From positions 39,380,437 through 39,444,436 of the forward strand of contig NC_090409.1 of the NCBI RefSeq assembly GCF_036365525.1: a stretch of DNA of 64,000 nucleotides, read 5' to 3'. The stretch is from Heterodontus francisci. Lineage: Eukaryota. Every line of letters starts with the position of its first letter. Within the stretch, counting starts at the first letter, position 1. The notes beneath the pieces are model-generated. The model searched no databases and had not been told where the DNA came from. It saw only the letters and a list, made by a program, of their open reading frames with translations. The position numbers and the translations under genes are program-made. Below, piece after piece: positions 310 to 51,203 of the stretch.

Positions 310-935
310 CTGAAACAGCAGCAACAGCATTTAGCAGCAGCAGCAGGAGGAGGAGTTTCTGTAAGTTGGGTCCCTGCAACAAGAAAACACAGTTACCCCC
401 CTTTACCACAGTTTCTTGCTGCTCATGTCCATTACTGAACCGGGACAGGAGACAGTCCATGGTCCCACTCCCCATTACTGACCCCCCTCCCTCCCGGCTC
501 TGAGACACATTGAGACCGGGAGCAGCCCTGACACAGTCCATGGTCCCTCTCCCCATTACTGACCCCCCTCCCTCCCGGCTCTGAGACACATTGAGACCGG
601 GAGCAGCCCTGACACAGTCCATGGTCCCGCTCCCCATTACTGACCTCCCTCCCTCCCGGCTCTGAGACACATTGAGACCGGGAGCAGCCCTGACACAGTC
701 CATGGTCCCTCTCCCCATTACTGACCCTCCTCCCTCCCGGCTCTGAGACACATTGAGACCGGGAGCAGCCCTGACACAGTCCATGGTCCCTCTCCCCATT
801 ACTGACCCTCCTCCCTCCCGGCTCTGAGACACATTGAGACCGGGAGCAGCCCTGACACAGTCCATGGTCCCACTCCCCATTACTGACCCCCCGGGTGTGA
901 GACACTGACAATACCTGCTGTGTTTTTCTATCCAT
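310..935 (-). CDS. Paralog D (partial): first two coding exons of a single-IgV B7/butyrophilin-like membrane protein; the IgV exon lies off the left edge
   Basis: Exon 935-915 encodes MDRKTQQ (donor GTATTG). Exon 373-310 encodes GPNLQKLLLLLLLLNAVAAVS-G (acceptor ttgcag, donor GTAAAC), as in paralogs A-C. Bases 1-30 match intron-2 sequence that lies about 225 nt before the IgV acceptor in paralog B. Confidence 0.75.
465..890 (-). repeat. 81-bp minisatellite in intron 1 of paralog D (5 units plus a partial unit)
   Basis: Unit ggtcagtaatggggagagggaccatggactgtgtcagggctgctcccggtctcaatgtgtctcagagccgggagggagg; intron length 541 = 136 + 5x81. Confidence 0.95.
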
Positions 936-1176
936 TGCCCCGATCCTGGATCATTCTCTCCCGGAGACAGGAGACTGGGAATCTGCTGCTCAGGGTCAGA
1001 AACAGCAGCCGCTGGGTCAGACAGTGAATATTGAAACTGACTGAGCTGCTGAATCTTTACAGACGGTGACAGTGGCGGGAATATGACACTGAAACCTGGA
1101 TCCGGGTTCTAAATAAACCATTTCTTGGCGGGAACGGCTTCTGTTGGCAGTCAGGGCCGGGGTCAGAGCAGGTCGC

Positions 1177-1855: not shown

Positions 1856-1859
1856 GAGT

Positions 1860-2474: not shown

Positions 2475-2778
2475 AAATTTTATTTAGAGATACAGCACTG
2501 AAACAGGCCCATCAGCCCACCGAGTCTGTGCTGACCAACAACCACCCATTTATACTAACCCGACAGTAATACCATATTCCCGACCACCTACGAGGGGCAA
2601 TTTACAATGGCCAATTTACCTATCAACCTGCAAGTCTTTGGCTGTGGGAGGAAACCGGAGAACCCGGCGAAAACCCACACAGTCACAGGGAGAGCTTGCA
2701 AACTCCACACAGGCGGAACCCATAATCGAACCCAGGTGGCTGGAGCTGTGAGGCTGCGGTGCTAACCACTGTGCTGCC
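2475..2778 (-). mobile_element. HE1-like V-SINE
   Basis: tRNA-like head (cagtggttagcaccgcagcctcacag), V-domain (tgtgtggagtttgcaag...ggtttcctcccaca) and CR1-type 3' tail, inserted in the CR1 RT. Confidence 0.85.
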
Positions 2779-3140
2779 ATCTGCAAACTTACTAATCATG
2801 CCCCCTACATTCTCATCCAAGTCATTAATATATATGACAAACAACAGAGGGCCGAGCACCGATCCCTGCGGCACACCATTGGACACCGGCCTCCAATCTG
2901 AAAAACAACCCTCCATTTCCACCCTCTTGCTCCTATCACCAAGCCAATTTTGTATCCAATTGGCTAGCTCACCCCGGATCCCATGTGTTCGAACCTTCTG
3001 GACCAGCCTACCACGCGGGACCTTGTCAAAGGCCTTGCTAAAGTCCATGTAGACAACGTCCACCACCCTGCCCTCGTCAATCCTCTTGGTCACCTCCTCA
3101 AAAAACTCAATCAAATTTTATTTGATTTATTTTTTTTACC

Positions 3141-3345
3141 AAAAGACTTGCAGGTTGATAGGTAAATTGGCCATTATAAATTGCCCCTAGTATAGGTAGG
3201 TGGTAGGGGAATATAGGGACAGGTGGGGATGTGGTAGGAATATGGGATTAGTGTAGGATTACTACAAATGGGTGGTTGATGGTCGGCACAGACTCGGTGG
3301 GCCGAAGGGCCTGTTTCAGTGCTGTATCTCTAAATAAAATAAATA
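3141..3345 (+). mobile_element. HE1-like SINE, 5'-truncated
   Basis: Matches the 3' half of the SINE at 4685-5040; A-rich tail. Confidence 0.8.
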
Positions 3346-4684
3346 AATAAAAATTTGAGAGACATGATATCCCATGCACAAAGCCATGCTGACTATCCCG
3401 AATCAGACCATGCCTTTCCAAATGCATATAAATCCTGTCTCTCAGAATCCCTTCCAATAACTTTCCCACCACTGATGCAAGGCTCACCGGCCTGTAGTTC
3501 CCTGGCTTATCCCTGCTGCCCTTCTTAAATAAAGGCACAACAATAGCTATCCTCCAGTCTTCCGGTACCTCACCCGTGGCTAACGATGATACAAAAATCT
3601 CTGCCAGGGCCCCAGCAATCTCCTCCCTTGCTTCCCATAATGTCCTAGGATGCATCTGGCCAGGCCCTGGGGATTTATCCACCTTAATGCGCTTCAAAAC
3701 CTCCAACACCTCCTCCTTTGTAATGTTGATATGCTCCAGGATATCGCTGTTCCCTCCCTTGAACTCACTCGCTTCCATGACCTTCTCCACGGTAAATACA
3801 GACGAGAAGTATTCATTTAAGACCTCGCCCATTTCCAGTGACTCCTCACATAGATTACCACACTAATTCTTAAGGGGACCTACTCTCTCCCTAGCAACTC
3901 TTAATGTACTTACAGAATCTTTTAGAATTCTCCTTCATCTTATCTGCTAGGAAAGTCTCATGGCCCCTTTTCGCCCTCCTAATTTCCTTCTTAAGTGTAC
4001 TCCTACATCCCTTACACTCCTCGAGGGACTTGCTTGATCCCAGCTGCCTATACCCGACATATGCCTCCTTCTTTGTCCTGACCAGACCCTCAATATCCCT
4101 CGACAACCAAGGTTTCCTAAACTTGCCAGCCTTGCCCTTCAATCTAACAGGAACGTGCCGGCCCTGAACTCTTCCTATCTCACTTTTAAAAGCCTCCCAC
4201 TTGCCAGACGTCCCTTTACCTGTAAACAGCCTCTCCCAATCAACTTTTGAGAGATCCTGTCTGGTGCCATCAAAATTAGCCTTCCCCCAGTTTAGGACTT
4301 CAACAGGAGGACCAGTCCTATCCTTTTCCATAGCTATCTTGAAGCTAATAGAGTTATGGTCACTGGTCCCAAAGTGCTCCCCCACTGACACATCAACCAC
4401 CTGCCCAGCCTCATTTCCTAAGAGCAGGTCGAGTGTCGTCCCTTCTCTAGTAGGGCCATCCACATACTGCTTCAGAAAACTATCCTGGACACACTTAAAT
4501 TCTTCCCCATCTGATCCCTTAGCACGAAGGCAGTTCCAGTCAATATTAGGGAAGTTAAAATCACCTACTATTACAACAATATAATTCCTACACCTATCTG
4601 TGATTTCCCTACATATATGCTCCTCCCATTCCCTCTGAATATTGGTGGGCTTAGAGTAAAACCCCAAAGTGATCACCAAAGTGC

Positions 4685-5040
4685 GGGTGGCACAGTGGCG
4701 CAGTGGTTAGCACCGCAGCCTCACAGCGCCAGTGACCCGGGTTCAATTCTGGGTACTTCCTGTGTGGAGTTTGCAAGTTCTCCCCGTGTCTGCGTGGGTT
4801 TTCTCCGGGTGCTCCGGTTTACTCCCACAAGCCAAAAGACTTGCAGGTTGGTAGGTACATTGGCCACTATAAATTACCCCTAGTATAGGTAGGTGGTAGG
4901 GAAATATATAGGGACAGGTGGGGATGTGGTAGGAATATGGGATTAGTGCAGGATTAGTATAAATGGGTGGTTGATGGTCAGCACAGACTCGGTGGGCCGA
5001 ATGGCCTGTTTCAGTGCTATATCTCTAAACTAAACTAAAC
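4685..5040 (+). mobile_element. HE1-like V-SINE, full length
   Basis: A/B-box-like head ggcacagtggcgcagtggttagc...gggttcaattct, V-domain, CR1-shared tail ending in (ctaaa)n. Confidence 0.9.
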
Positions 5041-5110
5041 CTCTTTCTTATTTCTAAGTTCTACCCATATTGCCTTGCTGGACATTCCCCCTGGGATATC
5101 CTCGCTAAGT

Positions 5111-6260
5111 TACCCATGGCAGGCTGATGGAGAAAGTGAAGGCGCTTGGGGTCCAAGGTGTACTAGCTAGATGGATAAAGAACTGGCTGGGCAACAGGAG
5201 ACAGAGAGTAGCAGTAGAAGGGAGTTTCTCAAAATGGAGACGTGTGACCAGTGGTGTTCCACAGGGATCCGTGCTGGGACCACTGTTGTTTGTGATATAC
5301 ATAAATGATTTGGAGGAAAGTATAGGTGGACTGATTAGCAAGTTTGCAGACGACACTAAGATTGGTGGAGTAGCAGATAGTGAAGGGGACTGTCAGAGAA
5401 TACAGCAGAATATAGATAGATTGGAGAGTTGGGCAGAGAAATGGCAGATGGAGTTCAATCAGGGCAAATGCGAGGTGATGCATTTTGGAAGATCCAATTC
5501 AAGAGTGAACTATACAGTAAATGGAAAAGTCCTGGGGAAAATTGATGTCCAGAGAGATTTGGGTGTTCAGGTCCACTGTTCCCTGAAGGTGGCAACGCAG
5601 GTAAATAGAGTGGTCAAGAAGGCATACGGCATGCTTTCCTTCATCGGACGGGGTATTGAGTACAAGAGTTGGCAGGTCATGTTACAGTTGTATAGGACTT
5701 TGGTTCGGCCACATTTGGAATACTGTGTACAGTTCTGGTCGCCACATTATCAAAAGGATGTAGATGCTTTGGAGAGGGTGCAGAGGAGGTTCACCAGGAT
5801 GTTGCCTGGTATGGAGGGCGCTAGCTATGAAGAGAGGTTGAGTAGATTAGGATTATTTTCATTCGAAAGACTGAGGTTGAGGGGGGACCTGATTGAGGTG
5901 TACAAAATCATGAGAGGTATAGACAGGGTGGATAGCAAGAAGCTTTTTCCCAGAGTGGGGGATTCAATTACGAGGGGACACGAGTTCAAAGTGAGAGGGG
6001 AAAAGTTTAGGGGGGATATGCGTGGAAAGTTCTTTACGCAGAGGGTGGTGGGTGCCTGGAACACGTTGCCAGCGGAGGTGGTAGATGCGGGCACGATGGA
6101 GTCTTTTAAGATGTATCTAGACAGATACATGAATGGGCAGGAAGTAAAGAGATACAGAACATTAGAAAATAGGCGACATGTTTAGAGAGAGGATCTGGAT
6201 CGGCGCAGGCTTGGAGGGCCGAAGGGCCTGTTCCTGTGCTGTAATTATCTTTGTTCTTTG
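5111..6260 (+). mobile_element. Young 5'-truncated CR1 LINE (RT C-terminal half plus 3' UTR)
   Basis: Uninterrupted 352-aa ORF 5127-6185 with GVPQGSVLGPLLF, FADDTK, RPHLEYCVQFW; CR1 3' tail gggccgaagggcctgttcctgtgctgt; inserted into an older antisense CR1. Confidence 0.95.
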
Positions 6261-6279
6261 TACTGCCGTGATGACTTTA

Positions 6280-6475: not shown

Positions 6476-6494
6476 GACGTTATAATTGGAAAAA

Positions 6495-6645: not shown

Positions 6646-6709
6646 TGACCAGGTCATCTGGAATACTGTTGTGCAGCTGGGAGAGGAGGGGTTGGGGATG
6701 GGAACAGGG

Positions 6710-7415
6710 TCAGAACCGAGGGAGGGCCGCACCGTCGGAGGGACAGTACCGAGGGAGGGCCGCACCGTCGGAGGGACAGTACCGAGGGAGGGCCGCACCG
6801 TCGGAGGGACAGTACCGAGGGAGGGCCGCACCGTCGGAGGGTCAGTACCGAGGGAGGGCCGCACCGTCGGAGGGTCAGTACCGTCGGAGGGCCAGTACCG
6901 AGGGAGGGCCGCACTGTCGGAGGGCCAGTACCGAGGGAGGGCCGCACCGTCGGAGGGCCAGTACCGAGGGAGGGCCGCACCGTCGGAGGGTCAGTACCGA
7001 GGGAGGGCCGCACCGTCGGAGGGTCAGTACCGAGGGAGGGCCGCACCGTCGGAGGGTCAGTACCGAGGGAGGGCCGCAACGTCGGAGGGTCAGTACCGAG
7101 GGAGGGCCGCACCGTTGGAGTGTCAGTACCGAGGGAGGGCCGCACCGTCGGAGGGTCAGTACCGAGGGAGGGCCGCACCGTCGGAGGGTCAGTACCGAGG
7201 GAGGGCCGCACCGTCGGAGGGTCAGTACCGAGGGAGGGCCGCACCGTCGGAGGGTCAGTACCGAGGGAGGGCCGCACCGTCGGAGGGTCAGTACCGAGGG
7301 AGGGCCGCACCGTCGGAGGGTCAGTACCGAGGGAGGGCCGCACCGTTGGAGTGTCAGTACCGAGGGAGGGCCGCACCGTCGGAGGGTCAGTACCGAGGGA
7401 GGGCCGCACTGTCAG
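6710..7415. repeat. 33-bp minisatellite (~21 copies)
   Basis: Unit ccgagggagggccgcaccgtcggagggtcagta. Confidence 0.95.
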
Positions 7416-7419
7416 ACAA

Positions 7420-10163: not shown

Positions 10164-13100
10164 ATGGATGGAGAAGCGCTGCAGGTATTGTCAGTGTCTC
10201 ACACCCGGGGGGTCAGTAATGGGGAGAGGGACCATGGACTGTGTCAGGGCTGCTCCCGGTCTCAATGTGTCTCAGAGCCGGGAGGGTCAGTAATGGGGAG
10301 AGGGACCATGGACTGTGTCAGGGCTGCTCCCGGTCTCAATGTGTCTCAGAGCCGGGAGGGAGGGGGGTCAGTAATGGGGATTGGGACCATGGACTGTGTC
10401 CTGTCCCGGCTCAGTAATGGACATGAGCAGCAAGAAACTGTGGTAAAGGGGGGTAACTGTGTTTTCTTGTTGCAGGGACCCAACTTACAGAAACTCCTCC
10501 TCCTGCTGCTGCTGCTAAATGCTGTTGCTGCTGTTTCAGGTAAGCGCTGTGACTGCTCTCACATTTCAGCAGAGTTCGGGGCTGCTGGTGACATGGATTA
10601 TATCAGGATTTATCTTCCTGGATGGTGCTAACCTTGTGAATTTATACAGACTGCAGTTAGCTGTCTCCTGGAAAGAACATTTGTCTGGGTGTCTGGGACT
10701 GAAATCAGTAATGTGTATATTACTGGGGAATAGTGTTCATTATATCAGGAGTTCATCTTGCTTTAAGGTGCTGTGTTCACTGTGAGTGGGCCCATTGAGG
10801 GAGTGGACACAGTCGGTTCACATTACACATAATGATCATGAGACCTGAAAGGAAGGCAGTTAATGTCTTCAGATTAACCCCTGTGATGTGAACAGTGGAA
10901 TCTGGACACTGAGCAACACTCGGTGACACTGGGATGGGTGACTGGGGTCCAGTGGTACTGGGATGGGGTCCTGAGCACTGGGATCAGGAGTCTGGGACAG
11001 TCCTGGATCAAATAGAACTGGGAATTGCCTCTGAGCATGGGGAGTAGGGTCATCAGGACTGGGGGTTGTGTTTTGGGTCCTGGGAGGGGGCAGAGTCTGG
11101 CCGTATTGGGGTGAGGAGCAAGGTCTGACAGGTTAGTGGTGGAGGGAGGTGAGGATCCACATTGCCTCGGCCCCTTTCAGACCATCAGGTGCTGCCTCAC
11201 CCCCTACACAGTGTACTCGTCCGTCATTGTCCCCCCAACCTGTCCAAAGCCCTTTCCACATCCTCGGGTACCCCCTCCCCCACCCGTTCCTGTCTTTACA
11301 TTTCAGGGTCAGTTTTCTGCTCCTGAGCTCCACCTCACATTGTGCACCCCCAGTCTGTCATTGTTCTCCCAAAGGGGGGAGGTGGGCAGGGTGACCAATA
11401 TCCTGATGTGTTCTCCCAGCATGTGTACAATGGGAAACACACGATTCAAAGTGCTGTCCAGCTGCTCTGTGGATACAAATATCCAGCACAAGCTGGTTTT
11501 AGTTGAAGGCCCTTAATGTCTGACCTTTAACCTTCCCACAGAAATGAAAGCAGTGAGTTACTGATCAGTGCTTCTTGTAAATCAAGCATCGCAGTGTAAC
11601 CATGTGGAGCTTGGGATGGAATGTACCAGCAGGGAGGTTATATCTGTGGATAAATACTTTCAATCTTTTCCAGGTTACTCGCCTGTCCCAGTTTCTGGGT
11701 TCCTTGGGGAGCAGGTTGTGCTGCCCTGTATCTACAAAGGGAATGTCCCAGTCTCTGATTTACAGGTAATTTGGTGGATATGCAAGCGTGGAGTATCACA
11801 TAATTTTGTCGATGGAAATGATGATTTGACACTACAAGACCCGCAGTTCAGAAACAGAACAAACCTGTTCCAAGATCAACTGGAACAAGGCAACTGGTCA
11901 CTTATGATCTCTGACCTCAGGCAGTCAGACCAGAATGAGTATCAGTGTGAGATTACTGAGAGGACAGGTGTGGTCTTTCTTCAAGATGTCCATCTCTCTG
12001 TAACAGGTGAGAGGTTTCTGTTTCAGGTATTCTGCATTTACTCTCTGATTTTATGGGTACGGTAGTGCAGTGGTTATGTTACTAGACTAGTAATCCAGAG
12101 GCCTGGACTAATGATCCAGAGAACGTGAGTTCAAATCCCACCATGGCACTTTCAGAATTTGAATTCAGTTTGAAATAATTTTGGAAATATAAAGCTGGTC
12201 CCATGCCCTCCTTGCAACTCTCACTTCCACCTAGTTTTGTGTCATCTGCAAAATTGAAAATATTGATCTCCACATCCAAATCATTGATCTAGATTGTTAA
12301 TAGCTGGGCCCAAGCACCGATCCTTGTAGTATCCCACTTGTAACAGCCTGCCAACCTGGAAATGACCCATTTATTCCGACTCTCTGTTTTCTGTCTGTTA
12401 ACCAGTTCTCAATCCCTGCCAGTATATTCACTCCAATCCCATGTGTTCTCATTTTGTTTACCAACCTCTTGTGTGGGACTTTTTCAGAAGCTTTCTGAAA
12501 ATCCAGTTACAGCACATCCACCTCTTCCCTCCCTTTTCTATTCTGTTAGTTACATCTCAAAAAAAAAAACTCCAACAGGTTTATAAACCATGACTTCCCT
12601 TTCATAAATCCAGGTTGACTCTGCCCAATCCTACCATTATTATCGAAGTGTCCAGTTTTCACACCCTTTATTGTAAATTCTAGCATTTTCCCTATAACTG
12701 ATGTCTAGGCTAACAGGCCTGTAGTTCCCTGTTTTCTCTCTCCCTCCTTTCTTAAACAGTTGGGTTACATTTACCACCTTCCAGTCTGCGGGAACCATTC
12801 CAGAGTCTACAGAATTTTGAAAGATGACCACTAATGCATCAACTATCTCTACAGCCACCTCTTTCAACATGCTGGGATATAGATCATCAGGTCCAGAGGA
12901 TTTATCTACTTTCAGTCCCACTAATTTCTCTTGTACTTGTTTATTAATATTGGTATCTTGCAGTTCCTTGTTTACACTAGTCCCTTGATTCTCCATTATT
13001 TCTGGGAGCTGTTTAGTATTTTCCTCTGTGAAGACAGACACAAAGTATTTGTTTTATTTTCTCTGCCATTTCCTTAGAATCATAGAGAGATACAGCATCA

Positions 13101-14883
13101 AAACAGACCCTTTGGCCCACCGAGTCTGCGCTGACCATTAACCACCCATTTACATTAATCCTACATTAATCCCATTTTCCTTCTCACATCCCCTCAATTC
13201 TCCTACTATCTACCTACGCTAGGGGTAATTTTTTTTTTTTACAATGGTCTATTTACCTATTAACCCGCAAGGAAACCGGAGCACCCGGAGGAAACCCACA
13301 TGGTCAGAGAGAGAGCTTGCAAACTCTGCACAGGCGGTACCCAGACTGAACCCGGGTCACTGGAGCTGTGAGGCTGCAGTGTTAACCACTGTGCCGCCCT
13401 TGTTCCCAATTATAAATTCTCCTAAGTCTGTTTGTAATGGACCCACATTTGTCTTTGCTAATCTTTTCTGTTTTACAGATCTGGAGAAGCTTTTACAGTC
13501 TGTTTTTATGTTTCTCGCTAATTTACTCTCGTATTCTATTTTCCCTTTCTTAAACTTTTTCCCGGTCCTCCTTTGCAGAATTTTGAAATGTTCCCAATCC
13601 TCAGGATTAACATTTTTTTTGGCAACTTTATACGCCTCTTCCTTTGCTCCAATACAATCCTTGATTTCTTTTGTTAGCTACAGTTGGAACACTTTCCTTG
13701 CTGGGATTTTGTACATTAAAGAAATGCATTTTTGTTGTAAACTATGTATTAGATCTTCAGGTGTGAGCAATTGCCTGTCTACCGTCACACACAATACTAA
13801 ACACATGATGTTTTCTTTAGAGCGAGCTCGTACACCTGGACTGAACACACCTGTACTGAACACACCTGTACCAGGTAAATCTGTTTCTAAACTACTGCAT
13901 GTGTTTTTAGATTTTACATATGCTCACACTGAATGGGTAATAAGTCCAACAATATGTGCGAGGAGCTCATGGACTGTTCTGTCACTACGTTCGAGACCAT
14001 TCGATCAGCTGCCTCTGTCGTGTCCCTCCCTTCCACTAGCACACCTGGCCAAACTTCCTATAATCCTGCCCTAACCCTGAACTCCCATCTTTCTCTGGTT
14101 TCTCTCCTATTTCCACTCATTCCCTGTTTGAGCTCATCTTGTCCATGAGACCCACCTCCTGTTCCCTTGATCCTGTTCCTGCTAAACTACCGAAAACCCA
14201 CCTTTCCCTCTTGGTTGTAATGTTAGTCGATATTGTAAATGCTTGTCTCCAGGTGTTATCTGCCTCTCCTGTAAATCTGGCGAGATCATTCCTATCCTCA
14301 AAAAAATAACCCTTAACCTTTGGAAACTACTGTCCAATCTCCTACCTCCCTTTCCCCTCCCAAATCCTTTAATGTGTTGTCACCTTCCAAATCTTTTCCC
14401 ATCTTTCCGGGAACTCCAGGAGCTGGATGTAAACCAGCATCCATCCAATCCTGTGATTTTCACGAGTTTAAAATTCCTGCTCTATTTCAGCGAGCTGTTG
14501 GGTTTAATTGAAGGGAAGCTGCTGCTGGTCAGTGTCCAGTTATCTCCATTGGAAAGCATGTATCTATCAGACTGTGGGGCAGTGTGTGTGTGTGTGTGTG
14601 AGATTATTGATATTTAACCTCCCACATTCCTCCAGGACTAGAATTGACCAGGGATGTGTTTGTACTGAGGATGGTTCTGAAACACTAGGTGCTGACGGTC
14701 TCTGCTGTTAGTTTTGTTAGTGTGTCCCAGTCTGTTAACAGCTTCATTCTGTCTCTAGGTCCTGGACTCTCTACTGGAGCAGTAGTTGGATTGGTCATCG
14801 CAATTCTTGTGCTTATTTGCATAATTCTTGTTCTTGTTTGCATAATTCTGGATTTCATAATCCGAAACCGACAAAGATGGTGA
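10164..14883 (+). CDS. Paralog A: single-IgV type-I membrane protein, B7-family/butyrophilin-like (CD276/VTCN1/MOG-like)
   Basis: Exons 10164-10184 (MDGEALQ), 10476-10539 (signal peptide), 11674-12006 (IgV), 13821-13874 (stalk ERARTPGLNTPVLNTPVP) and 14759-14879 (TM ...IRNRQR). All introns are GT-AG with compatible phases 0/1/1/1. The end is set at the read-through stop; the true last exon is uncertain. Confidence 0.85.
10208..10400 (+). repeat. 81-bp minisatellite in paralog A intron 1 (2 units, the first with a 7-bp deletion)
   Basis: Intron length 291 = 136 + 74 + 81. Confidence 0.9.
11674..12006 (+). CDS. IgV exon of paralog A
   Basis: 333 nt, phase 1-1; VVLPC...W...QDPQFRNRTNLFQDQLEQGNWSLMISDLRQSDQNEYQC, a B7/BTN-type V-set signature. 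Confidence 0.92.
12205..13755 (-). mobile_element. Old CR1 ORF2 remnant in paralog A intron 3, shared with paralog B, with an A-specific HE1 SINE at ~13078-13398
   Basis: ORF 12640-13041 (KSSGPDDLYP...GNYRPVSL) is nearly identical to ORF 27011-27415. Confidence 0.85.
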
Positions 14884-16964
14884 GTTCTGGAATGTTCCGC
14901 AGTTCCCATTGTTAATTCTGGTTTTGTTTTATTATATTTGGTGTTGTGGAAATGTTGTGTGCACTGATACACTTTGTGCTGTGTGGGATGTTTCAATGCT
15001 GCATTATCCAGTCACTTCTAGCTTGTTGTCATCCTCTAGCTGCTGAACTGAAGGTGAAGAGCAGGAATGTGCGGCTCCCTCTATCACACAGTTAATAGAC
15101 ACTCGCCTAATCTCTGCAGCAAACAACTCACCAGCCTACACCTAAAATCCCCTTGGCCCCTCTCCTCTGACTTTTCACCAGCCTCTGATCCTTGATCTGT
15201 TCCCCAGTCACTGACTCCATCCCCCTCCCTGGCCACTGTTTGAGGCTGAACCAGACTGTTCACAACCTCGGAGTCCCATCAGACCCTGAGCTGAGCTTCT
15301 GAATCCAAATCCTCTCCATCACTCTAATACCACCTAGCTCCACCTCTGAGTATACCCTATGTTTGCTCCCATCTCTTGAGATCCTCACCCATGCCTTTGT
15401 TATCATCAAAATCAACTATTCCAATGTTCCCCTGGCCAATTCCACTTTGCACCCTCCGTAAATTTGAGCTCATCCAAACCTCTGCTGCCCCGTATCCGAA
15501 CTCACACCAAGTCTTGTTTTCCCATCACTCCTGTACTCACTGACCTACATTCATCCTCATGTTCAAATCCGCAACCCGCCAGCCCCCCCCCCCCCCACCA
15601 AAGTCTCTGTAACTTCCTCCAGCCCTACAACTCAGAGATCTTTGTGTATCCCCCAATTTCCATCACTCCATCATTGGCGGCTGTGCCTTCAGATGTCTGG
15701 GCCCCAAGCTCTGGAATTTCCTCCTGAAACCTCTCTGCCTCTCCCTTAAAAGCTCTCTCTGAGCTTTTGGTCACATGTCCTAAAATCTTTTCACACGGCT
15801 CGTTGTCTTTGTTTGAACAGTCACTCCCGTGAAATGCCTTCGGATTGTGAAGCTGTGAAAGAAATGCAAGTTATTGCCCAACCTCCATTTGTGTTTACAT
15901 TTTTTAAACCACTCCCTGTGATCCGGCCATCTTGGATTTCTCTGTCTCCCTCAACATCCACATCTCCCTGCCCACCTCTTACCCACCTGCCAGTGGGGAG
16001 GGGGAACTATTGCAGATTCTCTAACTCTGTCCTCCGACTCTTTCCCCCATTTCGATATTTCTGCCTCCGTCAGCCTGTTTGGTCACTGCTGGGTCGGGTT
16101 TGATCACATCCGGGAATATCCTGTCCATCTGTGATTCCTCTCAATAATTCAGGATCAGTCTGGAGAGTCCGGACATTCCCAGTCTCCTCCTGTCTGATCT
16201 GATCCCTATCATCTTCAGCTCAGTGTTAACTGAGATCCTCATCAATTCTTCTTAATCTCCAATGTTGAGGTGAGCTGTCATTTTTCTATTGGTCTGGTGT
16301 CTTGGTCAGCACAGGTCCTGTGGAGTGTCCAGCTCTTGCCCATTGCCTCCTCTATAAGCCTCCTCTCCTCTACACTCTGTGCTCCATCACCGTGCAGCTC
16401 CTGTGACCCATTTTCCAGCTGCCATTGGTGCCCAGGATGTTGAGTGTAATTTAATTGGTCTGTGTTCCTGAACAGCTCCTTTACACACTTGTACAAAGTG
16501 TTGGATTCTTTTAATGTAACCTGAACTCTGCTGTTTTTTCCCTCCCAGGAAAGAGAACAAACACAGCATCAAGCACAATGCAGCATCTAATGACCCCCCT
16601 TTGACAGGGGTGACTTGTTCAGGTGAAACACGGGACCTTGTGACGACAGCACCTGAGCATCAGAATGGAGCAGCTGAAGAACAAAACCTTCTGGGGAACG
16701 GGGCTGTCCAGCACTAACTGAGTTTACACTGCACTGAGCCTGGGTCAGGGAGGGGAAAATCAGCCCAGTGTTGTGGTTATCCAGTGAATCCTGGTGGAAA
16801 GTCTGAGTTCAGGATTGGGATCAACAATCACTTCCCTAGTTGTCCACCAGCTTTTAGTGATTGGTGCATCTTGGACTAGGATTTCTCTGCTGTACAGTTC
16901 CTCATCACACTGTTTGTGTATGGAATTTATATTGTAAATATTTATATGTGTTAACAATTGAAAC

Positions 16965-21395: not shown

Positions 21396-21561
21396 ATGAA
21401 ACAAGTTCCAATCTCTCAGCTGACTCCGGGCTGCAGGAGTTTGTTTCCAGAGGAACAGTTTCTCCCCTTTTCCCAGTTATCATTCACATTCCTGTTTGTT
21501 TTTCCAGCGGAGCATCAGCTTCCCTGTCTCTGGGAGGGGGGGATGATCCAGGATCGGGGGA

Positions 21562-21843
21562 ATGGATGGAAAAGCGCTGCAGGTATTGTCAGTGTCTCAC
21601 CCGGGAGAGGGAGACGGATCTGGGGGAAACTTTCCTTTCTTTCCCCCCAGGATTCGCCTCTTTACTGTTTGTCTCCATTTCTGGGCTTTGTCTCCCTGAC
21701 CCTGGGGCAGGGTCTCGTTTATAAAAGGAGAAATGTCGACATTTGAGATGGAGTGAGAGAAACTGACTTTAGACTGAAAATAAACACCCGGCTGTTAATC
21801 TACACCCGGGGGTGGGGAACACAGTGACACATCCCGGCTCAGA
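21562..21843 (+). pseudogene. Orphan exon 1 plus partial intron 1 of the IgV family (relic E)
   Basis: 21562-21582 encodes MDGKALQ with donor GTATTG. The following ~260 nt match paralog B intron 1 (33420-33707). It is truncated where a Tx1 element begins, and no signal or IgV exon follows. Confidence 0.7.
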
Positions 21844-33728: not shown

Positions 33729-33844
33729 TCTCCCGAACCCTGATCATCCCCTCTCGGAGACGGAGACAGGGAATCTGCTGCTCAACCCGGATCGGCCAAC
33801 TGCGCCTGTTATACTTTGAAACACAGGGACGATAGGGGTATGGT

Positions 33845-36084: not shown

Positions 36085-36195
36085 ATTACTGACCCCCCCG
36101 AGTGTGAGACACTGACAGTACCTGAAACCCCTTTTCTATCGTCAAGGCCTCGATCATCCCCTCCCGGAGACAGGGGAGCTGCTGCTGCTCAGCCG
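36085..36195 (-). pseudogene. ATG-less homolog of the family's exon 1 and intron-1 start
   Basis: Reverse complement reads ...gatagaaaaggggtttcag|GTACTGtcagtgtctcacactcgggggggtcagtaatgg, matching the exon-1 donor region of A, C and D. Confidence 0.55.
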
Positions 36196-37933: not shown

Positions 37934-38277
37934 AGATGTTAAAGTCCCTTATTTTCCCTAGCCCTCATGCACACACCACACATCCATTCAAAAACTGGTT
38001 AACCGGGGGAGGAAAAAGGAGTTTGGTTTACAGCTGTTTCATAGGAATGAAAAGAACAATTAAAAAAAAACGTTGTCATGATCTGGAAGGAAGATCTTTG
38101 GTTTGGCGAGGTGAACCAAAGTCGAATAGTTGGATGCCACTCGAAGTCTTTCCAGGTGAGGATGAGCCGTCGATGATGGGTAGGCTTTCAAAGAACCTCA
38201 ACAAAAGAAGGCTTTATATAAGGCTTTCCATCAGGTATGCAGCATGAAGGCTCTTTGGTCTTACAGCAGCAGTAAAG

Positions 38278-41807: not shown

Positions 41808-43745
41808 GGTATAGGCAGCTGGGATCAAGCGAGTCCCTCGGAGTATAAGGGATGCAGGAGTACACTTAAGAAGGAAATTAGGAGGGCGAAAAGGGGCCAT
41901 GAGATTTCCCTGGCAGATAAGATAAAGGAGAATCCTAAAAGATTCTGTAAGTTTTTAAGAGTAAAAGGGTAGCGAGGGAGAGAGTAGGTCCCCTTAAGGA
42001 TCAGTGTGGTAATGTATGTGAGGAGCCACTGGAAATGGGCGAGGTCTTAAATGAATACTTCTCGTCTGTATTTACCATGGAGAAGGTCATGGAATCTAGT
42101 GAGTTCAAGGGAGGGAACAGCGATATCCTGGAGCCTATCAACATTACAAAGGAGGAGGTGTTGGAGGTTTTGAAGCGCATTAAGGTGGATAAATCCCCAG
42201 GGCCTGACCAGATGCATCCTAGGACATTATGGGAAGCAAGGGAGGAGATTGCTGGGGCCCTGGCAGAGATTTTTGTATCATTGTTAGCCACGGGTGAGGT
42301 ACCGGAAGACTGGAGGATATCTAATGTTGTGCCTTTAAGAAGGGCAGCAGGGATAAGCGAGGGAACTACAGGCCGGTGAGCCTTACATCAGTAGTGGGAA
42401 AGTTATTGGAAGGGATTCTGAGAGACAGGATCTATATGCATTTGGAAAGGCATGGTCTGATTCGGGATAGTAAGCATGGCTTTGTATGTGGGAAATCATG
42501 TCTCACAAATTTGATTGAGTTTTTTGAGGAGGTGACTAAGAGGATTGATGATGGCAGGGTGGTGGACGTTGTCTACATGGACTTTAGCAAGGCCTTTGAC
42601 AAGGTCCCGCATGGTAGGCTGGTCTGGAAGGTTCGAACACATGGGATCCATGGTGAGCTAGCCAATTGGATACAAGATTGGTTTGGTGATGGGAGGCAGA
42701 GGGTGGTAGTGGAGGGTTGTTTTTCAGATCGGAGGCCGGTGACCAGTGGTGTGCCGCAGGGATTGGTGCTGGGCCCTCTGTTTGTCATATATATTAATGA
42801 CATGGATGAGAATGTAGGGGGCATGATTGGTAAGTTTGCAGATAACACCAAAATTGGTGGTGTAGTGGACAGTGAAGAAGGTTGTCTAAGATTACAACAG
42901 GATATAGATAAACTGGGAAAGTGGGCAAGGGATTGACAAATGGAATTTAACGCAGACAAGTGTGAAATTATGCATTTTGGGACGCTAAACCAGGGCAGGA
43001 CATATACAGTGAATGGCAGGGCCCTGGGGAGTGTTGTTGAGCAGAGAGACCCTGGGGTGCAAGTACATAGTTCCCTGAAAGTGGCAACACAGGTAGACAG
43101 GATGGTGAAGAAGGCATATGGCATGCTTGCATTACGGCCGAGGCATTGAGTACAAGAGTTGGGACGTCCTGTTACAGTTGTACATAACGTTGGTTCGGCC
43201 GCATTTGGAGTACTGTGTGCGGTTCTGGTCGCCGCACTACAGGAAAGATGTGATTAAGCTAGAGAGGGTGCAGAAAAGATTCACAAGGATGTTGCCTGGT
43301 TTGGAGGGCTTGAGTTATAAAGAGAGATTGGATAGGCTGGGTCTGTTTTCACTGGAGCTAAGGAGGTTGAGAGGGGACATGACAGAGGTATATAAAATTA
43401 TGAGAGGCATAGATAAGGTAGATAGCCAGAATCTATTTCCCATGGTAGGGGTGACTAAAACTGGAGGACATAGATTTAAGGTGAGAGGGAGGAGGTTTAA
43501 AGGAGTTCAAAGGGGTACATTTTTCACACAAAGAATAGTGGGTATCTGGAATGAGCTGCCAGAGGAGCTGGTGGAGGCAGGAACAGTAGCAACATTGAAG
43601 AGGCATCTGGACAGGTACTTGAATGAACAAGACATGGAGGGATATGGAATTAATGCAGGCAGGTGGGATTAGTATAGATAGGCATTATGGTCGGCATGGA
43701 CGCGGTGGGCCGAAGGGCCTGTTTCTATGCTGTACCACTCTAACT
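41808..43745 (+). mobile_element. CR1 LINE ORF2 3' portion
   Basis: ORFs 42035-43672 with RT motifs and frameshifts; same subfamily as 2040-4680; CR1 tail. Confidence 0.92.
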
Positions 43746-44300: not shown

Positions 44301-44330
44301 CACTGGAGCTGGTGATCCAGGATCGGGGCA

Positions 44331-47300
44331 ATGGATAGAAAAGCACAGCAGGTATTGTCAGTGTCTCACACCCGGGGGGTCAGTCATGGGGAGAGGGACC
44401 ATGGACTGTTTCAGGGCTGCTCCCGGTCTCAATGTGTCTCAGAGCCGGGAGGGAGGGGAGTCAGTAATGTGGAGAGGGACCATGGACTGTGTCAGGGCTG
44501 CTCCCGGTCTCAATGTGTCTCAGAGCCGGGAGGGAGGGGGGTCAGTAATGGGGAGAGGGACCATGGACTGTGTCAGGGCTGCTCCCGGTCTCAATGTGTC
44601 TCAGAGCCGGGAGGGAGGAGGGTCAGTAATGGGGAGAGGGACCATGGACTGTGTCAGGGCTGCTCCCGATCTCAATGTGTCTCAGAGCCGGGAGGGAGGG
44701 GGGTCAGTAATGGGGAGAGGGACCATGGACTGTGTCAGGGCTGTTCCCGGTCTCAATGTGTCTCAGAGCCGGGAGGGAGGGAGGTCAGTAATGGGGAGAG
44801 GGACCATGGACTGTGTCAGGGCTGCTCCCGGTCTCAATGTGTCTCAGAGCCGGGAGGGAGGGGGGTCAGTAATGGGGAGAGGGACCATGGACTGTTTCAG
44901 GGCTGCTCCCGGTCTCAATGTGTCTCAGAGCCGGGAGGGAGGGGAGTCAGTAATGTGGAGAGGGACCATGGACTGTGTCAGGGCTGCTCCCGGTCTCAAT
45001 GTGTCTCAGAGCCGGGAGGGAGGAGGGTCAGTAATGGGGAGAGGGACCATGGACTGTGTCAGGGCTGCTCCCGGTCTCAATGTGTCTCAGAGCCGGGAGG
45101 GAGGGGGGTCAGTAATGGGGAGAGGGACCATGGACTGTGTCAGGGCTGCTCCCGGTCTCAATGTGTCTCAGAGCCGGGAGGGAGGGGGGTCAGTAATGGG
45201 GAGAGGGACCATGGACTGTGTCAGGGCTGCTCCCGATCTCAATGTGTCTCAGAGCCGGGAGGGAGGGGGGTCAGTAATGGGGAGAGGGACCATGGACTGT
45301 GTCAGGGCTGCTCCCGGTCTCAATGTGTCTCAGAGCCGGGAGGGAGGGAGGTCAGTAATGGGGAGAGGGACCATGGACTGTGTCAGGGCTGCTCCCGGTC
45401 TCAATGTGTCTCAGAGCCGGGAGGGAGGGGGGTCAGTAATGGGGAGAGGGACCATGGACTGTGTCAGGGCTGCTCCCGGTCTCAATGTGTCTCAGAGCCG
45501 GGAGGGAGGGAGGTCAGTAATGGGGAGTGGGACCATGGACTGTGTCAGGGCTGCTCCCGGTCTCAATGTGTCTCAGAGCCGGGAGGGAGGGGGGTCAGTA
45601 ATGGGGAGAGGGACCATGGACTGTGTCAGGGCTGCTCCCGGTCTCAATGTGTCTCAGAGCTGGGAGGGAGGGGGGTCAGTAATGGGGAGAGGGACCATGG
45701 ACTGTGTCAGGGCTGCTCCCGGTCTCCATGTGTCTCAGAGCCGGGAGGGAGGGGAGTCAGTAATGGGGAGAGGGACCATGGACTGTGTCAGGGCTGCTCC
45801 CGGTCTCAATGTGTCTCAGAGCCGGGAGGGAGGAGGGTCAGTAATGGGGAGAGGGACCATGGACTGTGTCCTGTCCCGGTTCAGAAATGGACATGAGCAG
45901 CAAGAAACTGTGGTAAAGGGGGGTAACTGTGTTTTCTTGTTGCAGGGACCCAACTTACAGAAACTCCTCCTCCTGCTGCTGCTGCTAAATGCTGTTGCTG
46001 CTGTTTCAGGTAAACGCTGTGACTGCTCTCACATTTCAGCAGAGCTCGGGGCTGCTGGTGATATGGATTATATCAGGATTGATCTTCCTGGATGGTGTTA
46101 ACCTTGTGAATTTATACAGACTGCAGTTAGCTATCTCCTGGAAAGAACATTTGTCTGGGTGTCTGGGACTGAAATCAGTAATGTGTATATTACTGGGGAA
46201 TCTTCTTCTTCTTTGGCCTCCTTGTCTCGAGAGACAATGGGTAAGCGCCTAGAGGTGGTCAGTGGTGTCAGTCGCTGTGAGGCAACTATGGAGTGACCTC
46301 TCCATGGCGCATGCCTGGGCGAATGTATGGAGGTTGAGAGTTGCCCAAGCGTCAAAACCCCCCTCTCGGCCTTTCTGGTGGGGTCCAAAGGAGTGCAGAG
46401 CACGACGTTTGGCACCGGTAGTATTCATTATATCAGGAATTCATCTTGCTTTAAGGTGCTGTGTTCACTGTGAGTGGGCCCATTGAGGGAGTGGACACAG
46501 TCGGTTCACATTACACATAATGATCATGAGACCTGAAAGGAAGGCAGTTAATGTCTTCAGATTAACCCCTGTGATGTGAACAGTGGAATCTGGACACTGA
46601 GTGTTAGTGAGAATGAATCTAGAAGAATCACTCGACACTTGGGTCTGCTCCAATGTCAAACAGTTTATTGAGTTACGCCAGCAGGGAGCAGGTCACTGGG
46701 CTGTCCAGATGCCCCTCCACTGAACAATGAAAAATCATCAATACTTATACATTTTCAAACAGTTACTCAGCCCATCCTTTCTGGACATGGTCCAATCATA
46801 ATGATTACAGATTCTCTCCATTGATTATTAAAGACCAATAGAAGTGGTTACCCGGTGTGAAAGGGGCTGCAGGACCAACCCATGGACAGATAGGGGATTA
46901 CTCATGATGTTTTCCATTCCTTTCTAGTCCCCATCCTTGGTTCTCCTGTACGCACACCACCTTATCTTAACCTTGTTACAGGCTGGTATCTTTGTCAGCA
47001 TTCCACATGGACATCTGCTCTCCATTGAATAAGTCTTTGAATTTATGTTACTCAGTTCCTGTGTGGAATGTGGTCAAGTTGGCTAAACCCCATGATGCCT
47101 TGCAAACTCTTCATTGTTCACTAAAATTACGTTACGAGTTACTCAAATAACATTTAAACAGGATGTTCTTTTCTGCAGGTGCCTCTGCGCTTGGGAATAC
47201 CCGTCAACACTGAGCAATACTCGGTGACACTGGGATGGGGTCCTGAGCACTGGGATCAGGAGTCTGGGACAGTCCTGGATCAAATAGAACTGGGAATTGC

Positions 47301-50300
47301 CTCTGAGCATGGGGAGTAGGGTCATCAGGATTGGGGATTGTGTTTTGGGTCCTGGGAGGGGGCAGAGTCTGGCCGTATTGGGGTGAGGAGCAAGGTCTGA
47401 CAGGTTAGTGGTGGAGGGAGGTAAGGATCCACATTGCCTCGGCCCCTTTCAGACCATCAGGTGCTGCCTCACCCCCTACACAGTGTACTCGTCCGTCATT
47501 GTCCCCCCAACCTGTCCAAAGCCCTTTCCACATCCTCGGGTACCCCCTCCCCCACCCGTTCCTGTCTTTACATTTCAGGGTCAGTTTTCTGCTCCTGAGC
47601 TCCACCTCACATTGTGCACCCCCAGTCTGTCATTGTTCTCCCAAAGGGGGGAGGTGGGCAGGGTGACCAATATCCTGATGTGTTCTCCCAGCATGTGTAC
47701 AATGGGAAACACACGATTCGAAGTGCTGTCCAGCTGCTCTGTGGATACAAATATCCAGCACAAGCTGGTTTTAGTTGAAAGCCCTTAATGCCTGACCTTT
47801 AACCTTCCCACAGAAATGAAAGCAGTGAGTTACTGATCAGTGCTTCTTGTAAATCAAGCATCGCAGTGTAACCATGTGGAGCTTGGGATGGAATGTACCA
47901 GCAGGGAGGTTATATCTGTGGATAAATACTTTCAATCTTTTCCAGGTTACTTGCCTGTCCCAGTTTCTGGGTTCCTTGGGGAGCAGGTTGTGCTGCCCTG
48001 TATCTACAAAGGGAATGTCCCAGTCTCTGAGTTACAGCTAATTTGGTGGATATCCAATCGTGAAATTTTACACAGATTTATCGATGGGAACGATGACTTA
48101 ATACAACAAGACCCACGGTTCAGAAACAGAACAAACCTGTTCAAAGATCAACTGGAGCAAGGCAACTGGTCACTAATGATCTCTGACCTCAGGCAGTCAG
48201 ACCAGAATGAGTATCAGTGTCAGATTTACAAGAGGATCGGTGAGCACTATCAATGGCAACAAGCTGATTCAGTCCATCTCTCTGTAACAGGTGAGAGGTT
48301 TCTGTTTCAGGTATTCTGCATTTACTCTCTGATTTTATGAGTACGGTAGTGCAGTGGTTATGTTACTGGACTAGTAATCCAGAAGCCTGGACTAATAATC
48401 CAGAGAACGTGGCTTCAAATCCCACCATGGCACTTTCAGAATTGAAATTCAGTTTAAAATAAATCTGGAAATATAAAGTTGGTCCCAATAAAAGTGACCA
48501 TGAAGCTGTTGGATTGTTGTAAAACCCAACTGGTTCACTAATGTCCCTCTCGGGAAGGAAACCTGCCATCCTTACCCGGTCTGGTCTATATGTGACTCCA
48601 GTCCCACATTAACCTGGTTAACTTTTAACTGCCCTCTGATTTGCTCGGTTACTTCAATCAGTTTGTATCAAACCACTAGAAAGAAAAAACAGACTAAAAC
48701 TGAACAGACCACTGGCTGTGACCCAGACATCAAATCAGGACACAGGAAAGGCAAACCCAGCCCAGTTGACACTGCAAAGTCCCCCTCGCTGACATCTGGA
48801 AATTGGTCTCCATGTTAGGCGAGCTGTGTGAGACAGTCACACTCACAGAATCAACCCTACATCCCAGACTCCTCTATCACCATCCCTGGGTATGTCTTGT
48901 CCCACTGGCAGGACAGACCCACCCGAGGTGGGGGCACAGTGGTATCCAGTCAGGAGGGAGTTTTTTATTCTTTTGCTGCATTTGCTGACAATGCATCCAC
49001 TCGGTGTCGCAATACTTGCACATGTGAAAATGCAGCCTGATCCACTGAAACGTCGCTGTCTGTGACCTTTTTGGCAGCTGCCAGTAATAAAGATGGCGAC
49101 GCTCAATTTATCACAAAACAAATGAAACACAAATGCCCACAGTGGCTGTGATCACTGCCTCCATCACACCCCCAACAGTACCTCGCTCCCTCCTGCCATC
49201 ACCACCTCCATCCCACCCCCAGCAATACCTCGCTCCCTCCTGCCATCGCCACCTCCATCAGTACCTCGCTCCCTCCTGACATCACTACCTCCATCCCACC
49301 CCCAGCAGTACCTCGCTCCCTCCTGCCTTCGCCACCTCCATCCCACCCCCAGCAGTACCTCGCTCCCTCCTGCCTTCGCCACCTCCATCCCACCCCCAGC
49401 AGTACTTCGCTCCCTCCTGCCATCGCCACCTCCATCCCACCCCCAGCAGTACCTCGCTCCCTCCTGCCATCGCCACCTCCATCCCACCCCCAGCAGTACC
49501 TCGCTCCCTCCTGCCATCGCCACCTCCATCCCACCCCCAGCAGTACCTCGCTCCCTCCTGCCATCGCCACCTCCATCCCACCCCCAGCAGTACTTCGCTC
49601 CCTCCTGACATCACTACCTCCATCCCACCCCCAGCAGTACCTCACTCCCTCCTGCCATCACCATCGCCATCCCACCCCCAACAGTACCTCGCTCCCTCCT
49701 GCCATCACCACCTCCATCCCACCCCCAGCAGTCCCTCGCTCCCTCCTGACATCGCCATCCCACCCCCAACAGTACCTCGCTCCCTCCTGCCATCGCCACC
49801 TCCATCCCACCCCCAGCAGTCCCTCGCTCCCTCCTGCCATCATTGCTGCCTACCGCAGCAGTCTACTCACCACTTGCTCCTGGCATCGCTGCTTCATTCC
49901 CTCTGCCATCCCTCTGCTCCCCTCCCCTGCTTATCTTTTCTGTCTCTGTGCGAGGAAGAAAGGCAGCAATCGCGGGACGGAGTGGGGAGGCTGGAGTGAA
50001 TGGCCCACAGATAGGTGGAGGTGTGAAGCGTGGAGTGAGTAGGTGGGGGGGTGGGTGGTGGAGGGCGGAGATGAAGCGAGGCTGGGGGTGAGCGGTGAGC
50101 AGACATTGCAGTACACAATGATGTTTGAGCGTAGACATGAGTAAGTCCTGGTAAACCGGGTGCTGACGTAGACTGCACATGGGCAGCACTGTACGAACAG
50201 CAAGACTCTGATCTGCACATGTGTGAAGCTGGGAGCTTCTGATGTTGGCAGTGGGTTGCGTTGTCAGCAGTCACTTTGTTTTATTTTATTCATGTTAGTG

Positions 50301-51203
50301 GGATGTCTGCGTCACTGGCCAGGCCAGCATTTATTGCCCATCCCTAATTGCTGTTGAACTGAGTGGCTTGCTCGGCCATTTCAGAGGGCAGTTCAGAGTT
50401 AACCATATTGCTGTGAGTCTGGAGTTACGTGTAGGCCAGACCAGCAGATTTCTTTCTCTAAAGGACATTCATGAACAAATCGACTGTTTTCATGGTCACC
50501 ATTATTCTAGCTTTTTATTTTAAATTACTGATTTTATTAATTAAATTCAAATTTCACCATCTGCTGTGGGTGGGATTCAAACCCCTGTCCCCAGAGCATT
50601 CACCTGGGCTCTGGAGTACTAGTCCAGTAACAGTCCCACTACACCCCACCAGTTCCCCATAGGCCCCAGGACTCCTCAGCATTGAAGTCAGTGGAAAGTA
50701 ATACTGATCCCATTGTAAACCAGCGTTCCATCCAATCCTGTGGTTTACCCAAACAGCAAATTATTTTAAATTCCTGCTCTATTTCAGCGGGCTGTTGGGT
50801 TTAATTAAAGGGAGGCTGCTGCTGGTCAGGGTCTGGTTATCTCCATTGGAAACCATGTATTGATCACATTGTGGGTGTGTAAGAAAGTCGAGCTGTGGGG
50901 TGGCTTCCTGTGTCTGTGGCTGTTTATTGGTGTTTAATCTCCCACATCCCTCCAGGACTAGAATTGACCAGGGATGTGTTTGCACTGGGGATGGTTCTGA
51001 AACACTAGGTGCTGACAGTCTCTGCTGTTAGTTTTGTTAGTGTGTCCCAGTCTGTTAACAGCTTCATTCTGTCTCTAGGTCCTGGACCCTCTACTGGATT
51101 GGTAGTTGGATTGGTCATCGCAATTCTGGTTCTTGTTTGCATAATTCTTGTTCTTCTTTGCATAATTCTGGTTTTCATAATCCAAAACCGACAAAGATGG
51201 TGA
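44331..51203 (+). CDS. Paralog C: single-IgV type-I membrane protein, B7-family/butyrophilin-like, with no stalk exon
   Basis: Exons 44331-44351 (MDRKAQQ), 45946-46009 (signal), 47946-48290 (IgV, 345 nt) and 51079-51199 (TM). Phases are compatible; the last exon is uncertain. Confidence 0.83.
44376..45870 (+). repeat. 81-bp minisatellite in paralog C intron 1 (18 units plus a partial unit)
   Basis: Intron length 1594 = 136 + 18x81. Confidence 0.96.
46201..46418 (-). mobile_element. RTE-like LINE 3' end, specific to paralog C
   Basis: (GAA)n tail and IVSRDKEA terminus; absent from the equivalent site of paralog A (~10730). Confidence 0.6.
46602..47209 (-). mobile_element. Solo LTR (608 bp), specific to paralog C
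   Basis: TGTTAG...TCAACA termini, 5-bp TSD CTGAG; empty site in paralog A at ~10908; AATAAA on the minus strand. Confidence 0.85.
47946..48290 (+). CDS. IgV exon of paralog C
   Basis: 345 nt, phase 1-1; the F-G loop is 4 codons longer than in A and B. Confidence 0.92.
49160..49842. repeat. 47-bp C-rich minisatellite (~14 copies) in paralog C intron 3
   Basis: Unit ctccatcccacccccagcagtacctcgctccctcctgccatcgccac. Confidence 0.93.

Follow-up and report, generated by a model that had tools for sequence, protein, structure and literature searches.

Which kind of surface protein is encoded by a cluster of small immunoglobulin V (IgV) genes in the horn shark Heterodontus francisci, and how have its members come to differ? 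The genes are located in a stretch of 64,000 nucleotides (nt) of contig NC_090409.1 (NCBI RefSeq assembly GCF_036365525.1, positions 39,380,437 to 39,444,436 of the forward strand), which was analyzed at full length and is termed the window in the following. In mammals, B7 and butyrophilin ligands control T cells, gamma-delta T cells and natural killer (NK) cells; the origin of this control is poorly known, and sharks belong to the most ancient extant animals whose immunity is based on antibodies and T cells. The cluster represents a real transcribed family, unstudied although its proteins have RefSeq predictions, that has so far been seen only in sharks; in architecture it is a novel variant of the B7 family, and its divergence pattern is unusual in being exon-specific. 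With moderate confidence, we read it as a horn-shark cluster of diversified B7-like surface ligands, built from one B7-H4-like IgV domain, an optional stalk, one membrane span and a tyrosine-free tail of 55 residues.

Gene Structure and Domain Content

Exons were placed individually by tblastn and local alignment and were not joined. The window contains three complete genes, A and C on the forward and B on the reverse strand, as well as the start of a fourth gene, D, on the reverse strand (Table 1). Positions and strands of the leader exons bear out the arrangement in two head-to-head pairs, D with A and B with C, that was given in a preliminary description of this DNA. The same description counted at least four paralogs, which agrees with the leader exons of four genes although D is represented by its first two exons only, and it portrayed each gene as signal peptide, one IgV domain, optional stalk and transmembrane (TM) segment, which is accurate except that a 21-nt first exon and a conserved cytoplasmic exon were overlooked; its end coordinate, 51203, reaches the TM exon of gene C only, and the tail exon of this gene is found further downstream (Table 1). 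With regard to relics, also mentioned there, one orphan first-exon-like piece was present, whereas tblastn returned no relic of a V exon.

With the first V-like open frame as query, tblastn identified exactly three V exons in the window, with E-values for Pfam V-set ranging from 3e-12 to 5e-11. AG and GT flank the exons at every border tested, and phase 1 is found at the end of all leader, V and stalk exons, the usual arrangement in genes of the immunoglobulin (Ig) superfamily. A stalk exon occurs in genes A (54 nt) and B (39 nt) and is lacking in gene C. All six exons of gene A are matched at 100% by the RefSeq protein P0161 (253 amino acids, "myelin-oligodendrocyte glycoprotein-like"), so this gene has already been predicted. 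In the tail exon of gene B, a run of at least nine C contains extra bases that shift the frame, with a stop after 22 residues and loss of the conserved C-terminus; either the gene is truly truncated here or the homopolymer was misassembled.

The lack of IgC and B30.2 exons had been stated earlier and holds: transcripts join V to stalk or TM, and neither open frames nor RefSeq models contain such domains. In genes A, B and C, 37 same-strand open frames of at least 70 amino acids lie between the V exon and the final one; Pfam matched none of them to Ig or SPRY, and two stem from the reverse transcriptase of long interspersed nuclear elements (LINEs). Pfam matches of P0161, P0170 and the two-V protein P0218 were confined to V-type Ig domains, without C-set or SPRY, and an IgC exon was absent from the joints in contigs of all four public runs considered below. 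A regular-expression scan for IgC-like open frames had produced chance patterns only and was superseded by the Pfam scans.

The V domain is of the B7 type, as previously suggested, and searches of solved structures ranked the IgV domain of human B7-H4 first. A single V sequence scored 57.6 bits against B7-H4, compared to 39 for MOG, 38 for PD-L1, 33 for BTN1A1 and about 31 per domain for CD276; a profile of 40 family sequences reached 71.7 bits for B7-H4, about 54 for PD-L1, 38.8 for SCN4B, 37 for MOG and 35 per domain for CD276. These top scores assign the V domain to the B7 family, on the B7-H4 side, and on the same profile scores the names SCN4B and MOG were rejected for the family. The genes are nevertheless not filed as B7-H4 orthologs because they lack its defining IgV-IgC ectodomain. 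Within the 40 sequences, conservation is complete or at least 90% for the cysteine pair, the tryptophan and two N-glycosylation sequons, and the look-alikes retrieved by an atlas search were generic CD276, HHLA2, BTN and MOG clusters only. In a 2026 survey of the Ig superfamily, VTCN1 is grouped with HHLA2 (PMC13262535).

A leader and a TM exon, combined with tails devoid of tyrosine in A and C, are the features of a type I membrane protein with a ligand-type tail. Lacking tyrosine, these tails are free of immunoreceptor tyrosine-based inhibitory or activation motifs (ITIM/ITAM), and the membrane spans carry no mid-span charged residue for pairing with an adaptor. The last 20 or so residues of the tail (C-terminal half) are conserved across four shark orders; in a tail-only search ten of eleven candidates were family members, and no other protein family with this tail was retrieved. 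The search also retrieved one Hemiscyllium protein, P0227, with a different ectodomain. In this carpet-shark protein the V domain is replaced by a non-Ig module that is rich in cysteine and about 100 residues long, and in P0019 from the carpet shark Rhincodon such a module precedes the V domain; leader, stalk, TM and tail are as in the family. Pfam gave no match to P0227, and tblastn no copy of the P0019 module in the window.

Transcription and Isoforms

Contigs of four public runs, whose label as RNA is a guess, were aligned to positions 10740-16735 of the window at 90% likeness. The joints of V to stalk and of stalk to TM exon, both bordered by GT..AG, were present in all four runs and that of TM to tail exon in three (coordinates in Table 1), while V was joined directly to TM in one. 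At the 5' border of the V exon (11671), the sequence on loose ends of contigs is that of the leader exon's 3' end. Summed depth amounted to 10^3 to 10^5 for exons vs. 10 to 10^2 for introns. The spliced joints establish that the contigs stem from RNA, whatever the labels of the runs. As a likeness of 90% admits close paralogs, they document splicing of the family and not expression of gene A alone. The possibility that no copy is expressed, considered at the outset, is contradicted by spliced contigs in every run.

The RefSeq models P0163 and P0171 lack the 121-nt TM exon, which puts the tail exon out of frame so that it ends after about 20 residues; judging from these models, the resulting isoforms would be soluble or secreted proteins. 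Isoforms without stalk exist alongside those without TM exon. A loose end at 13875 (run X2), directly after the stalk exon, is consistent with isoforms skipping the TM exon.

An Island of Divergence in the V Exon

The V exons of genes A, B and C differ from each other by 9.6-12.3%. The corresponding values are 0.6-0.9% for the 320 nt that directly precede the exon and 3.0% for five intron pieces combined, and Fisher p values of 1e-6 to 7e-10 make the contrast between exon and flank significant. Between A and C there are six mismatches in 717 nt upstream of the exon, and divergence peaks inside it at 11737-11856 and 11917-11990. The TM exon likewise diverges more than its flanks (79-92% vs. 94-97% identity). 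In the V exon, synonymous divergence amounts to 0.12-0.20 and exceeds intron divergence (p 2e-3 to 5e-6).

Among nine horn-shark proteins, variation is concentrated at residues 63-86 and 116-135. Synonymous divergence (dS) reaches 0.33-0.59 in the variable segments compared to 0.02-0.07 in the remainder of the V exon, a post hoc split that is biased since it was chosen after protein variability had been seen. Ratios of nonsynonymous to synonymous divergence (dN/dS) above 1, found for the less variable part of the exon between A and B and for the tail between A and C, hang on one to four synonymous changes. In the alignment of the nine proteins, two C' motifs and two types of F-G motif occur in all four combinations, which indicates exchange between paralogs. 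The simplest reading of the sequence comparison is that old, deeply diverged segments are embedded in a recently homogenized background; recent positive selection driven by point mutation would account less well for the divergence of the V exon. In genes of the major histocompatibility complex (MHC), introns are homogenized while the exons for the binding site stay diverse, and the pattern around the shark V exon can be likened to this.

The intron stretches upstream of the V exons (10957-11673, 47229-47945 and 32840-33160) are at least 99% identical among the paralogs, and the last 40 or so intron bases, when translated, recur in models from basking and whale shark that start inside the intron (P0003, P0160 and P0168). 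The stretch may be a conserved intronic element or just reflect slow shark evolution.

Distribution, Naming and Phylogeny

An exhaustive search yielded 2764 proteins at E<=0.001, with a distinct step in identity: 12 representatives, all from sharks including a sawshark, shared 57-69% identity, and all others among the matches listed at most 43%. In word-indexed searches, which reach close relatives only and cannot prove absence elsewhere, the named matches were again exclusively sharks (44/44 and 58/58), the larger set stemming from eleven species of the Heterodontiformes, Orectolobiformes, Lamniformes and Carcharhiniformes. The protein searches, which cannot establish absence, returned no member from a ray, skate or chimaera; outside the family, the 18 of the 138 listed representatives for which names were looked up came from teleosts (14), frogs (two) and Polypterus (one), with one entry left unnamed. 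A lineage-specific, multi-copy family, as originally envisaged, is in agreement with these counts, while the attribute chondrichthyan is wider than the evidence.

At least nine distinct horn-shark proteins belong to the family. Some shark models feature two V domains split by a stalk (P0218 and others), and none contains IgC. About ten RefSeq labels are in use for the family, i.e., MOG-like, CD276 homolog, VTCN1-like, ICOS ligand-like, BTNL2, CD86-like, sodium channel beta-4-like, JAM-like, MXRA8-like and uncharacterized. All of these names denote one family and should not be taken as orthology.

A tree was derived from 35 distinct V domains of the family and 18 outgroup domains. The shark family formed one separate clade (100/99) on a long branch. 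Within it, the nine horn-shark sequences constituted a single clade (97/90), which points to either expansion or homogenization within that lineage, and older sub-lineages are common to carpet sharks, mackerel sharks and catsharks. V domains of frog HHLA2 were the nearest outgroup, with weak support (96/79). The tree pattern, the frameshifted tail of gene B, the orphan first exon and the variable presence of the stalk exon are all signs of the birth-and-death mode that had been proposed for this family, and taken together these sequence features would fit birth-and-death evolution with some concerted evolution.

The full-text literature searched contained no description of the family; supplementary files, which were outside the search, may list these genes. 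The accessible portions of PMC12151841, PMC12841164, PMC10751288, PMC11599192 and PMC13262535 do not describe it either. As far as its accessible text goes, the last of these finds numbers of B7 ligand paralogs "generally consistent" among jawed vertebrates except turtles and leaves an expansion in sharks unmentioned (PMC13262535). The family can thus be called undescribed with respect to the literature searched, but not with respect to databases, as its proteins are predicted in RefSeq under unrelated names.

Layout and Repeats of the Locus

Self-comparison of the window revealed a segmentally duplicated, partly inverted region rich in satellites and in fragments of LINEs and short interspersed nuclear elements (SINEs). 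The exons and associated features are collected in Table 1.

Table 1. Exons, relic and intronic arrays of the B7-like gene cluster in the window (TRF, Tandem Repeats Finder).
Feature	Position	Strand	Evidence and remarks
Gene D, first coding exon, 7 codons	915-935	-	aligned to A exon 1; GT donor; start of RefSeq P0163/P0169
Gene D, leader exon	310-373	-	identical in 64/64 nt to A and C; rest of D, including V exon, beyond left end
Gene D, intron 1, 81-bp tandem array, 5.4 copies	452-892	.	TRF
Gene A, first coding exon, 7 codons	10164-10184	+	start of P0161
Gene A, intron 1, 81-bp tandem array, 2.7 copies	10194-10400	.	TRF
Gene A, leader exon, ends in phase 1	10476-10539	+	its 3' end on contig loose ends at 11671
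Gene A, IgV exon, phase 1-1, 111 codons	11674-12006	+	Pfam V-set 3.3e-12; 100% to P0161
Gene A, Pro/Thr-rich stalk exon, 54 nt, 18 codons	13821-13874	+	GT..AG joints 12006>13821 and 13874>14759
Gene A, TM exon, 121 nt	14759-14879	+	P0161 match
Gene A, cytoplasmic tail exon and stop, 55 residues, no tyrosine	16549-16717	+	joint 14879>16549; 100% to P0161
Orphan first-exon-like relic	21544-21598	+	blastn 94.5% over 55 nt to A exon-1 region
Gene B, cytoplasmic exon, frameshifted, stop at about 24040	23926-24108	-	insertion in C-run
Gene B, TM exon, 109 nt	25268-25376	-	tblastn/alignment
Gene B, stalk exon, 39 nt	26521-26559	-	alignment
Gene B, IgV exon	32507-32839	-	Pfam V-set 1.3e-11; 100% to V domain of P0165
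Gene B, leader exon	33291-33354	-	tblastn/alignment
Gene B, first coding exon	33708-33728	-	alignment
Distal alternative first exon of RefSeq P0165, gene B side	36122-36157	-	tblastn 12/12 residues
Distal alternative first exon of RefSeq P0170, gene C side	38078-38155	+	tblastn 26/26 residues
Gene C, first coding exon	44331-44351	+	alignment
Gene C, intron 1, 81-bp tandem array, 18.5 copies	44374-45870	.	TRF
Gene C, leader exon	45946-46009	+	tblastn/alignment
Gene C, IgV exon, 345 nt, four extra codons in F-G loop	47946-48290	+	Pfam V-set 5.4e-11
Gene C, TM exon	51079-51199	+	tblastn/alignment
Gene C, cytoplasmic tail exon and stop	52345-52513	+	100% to tail of P0170

The distal alternative first exons on the B and C sides are separated by 1.9 kb and divergently oriented, which suggests that they share a bidirectional promoter region. 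In D, A and C the 7-codon first exon is directly followed by the 81-bp array, which is not present in intron 1 of B. TRF identified a further tandem array of 118/229 bp (about six and three copies) between D and A at 1125-1856, and satellites are located between B and C (40-bp period, 33842-34938), in an intron of C (47 bp, 49151-49842) and between D and A (33 bp, 6706-7413). Open frames for LINE reverse transcriptase were found within and between genes on both strands, e.g., at 2683-6185, 30258-32266 and 42035-43672; since the duplicated units contain LINE insertions, the duplications are younger than the insertions. In the RefSeq model P0025 from the basking shark Cetorhinus, leader, V, stalk and TM are fused to a PRDM7/9-like protein. 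This is probably a merged gene model, hinting at a PRDM9-like neighboring gene.

Discussion

Under the favored reading, the proteins would act as cell-surface ligands in the manner of B7-H4 or B7-H3, and soluble forms of the ligand would arise when the TM exon is skipped. In the V domain, strands C, C', F and G would contact the partner; nearly all differences between the paralogs appear to map there, and the paralogs would differ in specificity. Selection would keep the copies different, and gene conversion or recent duplication would homogenize their flanks and reshuffle old variable segments.

Several points weigh against this interpretation. The strand assignment derives from sequence alignment to B7-H4 and general knowledge of IgV domains. 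The ectodomain that defines B7 proteins, IgV-IgC, is not present. Over the whole V exon dN/dS is 0.63-0.84 and thus below 1, and in the variable segments it is 0.49-0.74, so that a crude test gives no positive selection; the division into more and less variable parts was, in addition, picked with the variability in view. As the contigs were collected at 90% likeness, the joints could come from A or from close paralogs, and it is by spliced joints only that the guessed RNA label of the runs is borne out. Finally, variable loops and soluble isoforms would equally suit a recognition receptor.

This last possibility, i.e., germline-encoded recognition receptors in membrane-bound and soluble form that bind pathogens or altered self via loops resembling complementarity-determining regions (CDRs), with a logic nearer to the NITRs of teleosts and the VCBPs of amphioxus, is unlikely in our view but is the strongest of the competing explanations. 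It would account for variation in the C'-C'' and the CDR3-like F-G regions, for the four-codon length difference in gene C, for the TM-skipping models P0163 and P0171 with the compatible loose end after the stalk exon, and for the multi-copy nature of the family. On the other hand, the tails of A and C offer no tyrosine motif, the spans no charged residue at mid-span, and the V domain is of the B7 and not of the antigen-receptor type, its G strand lacking a J-like motif.

It is distinctly improbable that the genes encode non-immune single-IgV proteins, such as adhesion molecules or auxiliary channel subunits of the MPZ, SCN-beta or MOG kind. These share the layout of one IgV domain, one TM span and a short tail, several of the RefSeq names point to them, and the family profile matches SCN4B over V plus TM (38.8 bits) as well as MOG (37 bits), but B7-H4 scores far higher (71.7 bits). 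Genes for SCNxB, MPZ and MOG are single-copy and conserved, quite unlike the large, inverted and rapidly diversifying cluster found here.

Least probable of all, a set of mostly decaying duplicates with exon divergence due to relaxed constraint or misassembly of a repetitive region would agree with dN/dS of 0.63-0.84, the frameshifted tail of B, the orphan first exon and the abundance of LINEs, SINEs and satellites, but is opposed by intact frames and splice sites in A and C, by the existence of spliced transcripts (a pseudogene status was rejected for A and C, which are both intact and spliced), by framework residues that do not vary among the ten aligned shark species, and by the fact that relaxed constraint can neither make an exon diverge 10 to 15 times as much as the intron beside it nor lift synonymous divergence above intron divergence.

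Returning to the B7-like ligands, the preliminary description had proposed a role as immune ligand or receptor and a possible analogy with BG/BTNL clusters, both of which we regard as inference. A more far-reaching scheme, which we regard as doubtful, would see in the cluster an MHC-linked, shark-specific repertoire of minimal B7-H4-like ligands. Their contact face would consist of a small number of old variable segments (C'-C'' and F-G), exchanged between paralogs by segmental gene conversion and maintained in diversity by selection, with homogenized introns; as the counterpart of BTN/BTNL/BG in sharks, they would be germline ligands of gamma-delta T, NK-like or CD28-family receptors, which have undergone an expansion of their own in cartilaginous fish. 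If true, an MHC-like evolutionary regime would have been applied to a B7 ligand family. The family raises the question of a linkage to the MHC, as it exists for BTN, MOG and BG, along with that of a co-evolving receptor family. Transcribed, stripped-down and B7-H4-like, so far seen in sharks only and with a contact face diversifying on a homogenized background, it is a concrete and testable candidate for a lineage-specific ligand repertoire.

Comparison with Known Systems

The multi-V "CD276-like / BTNL2-like" proteins of bony fish and frogs form the next tier of similarity, with two or three tandem V domains scoring 45-62 bits each against the family profile. They share at most 43% identity with the family, compared to at least 57% within it, form a separate clade, and the shark tail was not seen in them.

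MOG resembles the shark proteins in its single IgV ectodomain with membrane anchor and provides the RefSeq name of genes A, B and C. This name is a best-hit label and not orthology: MOG is single-copy and has a second hydrophobic segment, whereas the shark family is multi-copy, shows no such segment after the TM span and scores 37-39 bits for MOG vs. 58-72 for B7-H4.

With butyrophilins, BTNL proteins and chicken BG, the shark genes have in common that B7-related genes are duplicated and clustered. They differ from butyrophilins and BTNL in lacking IgC and B30.2/SPRY, in a score of 33 bits for the V domain of BTN1A1 and in a last exon that stops after 55 residues. Chicken BG consists of a single IgV domain, a TM span and a long cytoplasmic tail of heptad repeats; the shark genes share the first two elements, but their tail is one 55-residue exon without repeats.

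The V domain of B7-H3 (CD276) and B7-H7 (HHLA2) is of the same B7 type (31-35 bits per domain for CD276), and some shark members resemble these proteins in possessing two V domains (V-stalk-V in P0218). CD276 and HHLA2 have IgC domains between or after their V domains, in contrast to the shark family, which is devoid of any IgC and forms a clade of its own.

B7-H4 (VTCN1), finally, possesses the best-scoring V domain of solved structure and has the D-E strand motif including an N-glycosylation sequon in common with the shark proteins; like these, it is a type I membrane protein with a tail free of tyrosine signaling motifs. B7-H4 is an IgV-IgC protein with a tail of a few residues that is encoded by a single gene, while the shark family combines a V domain without IgC with a Pro/Thr stalk, a conserved 55-residue tail and many paralogs.

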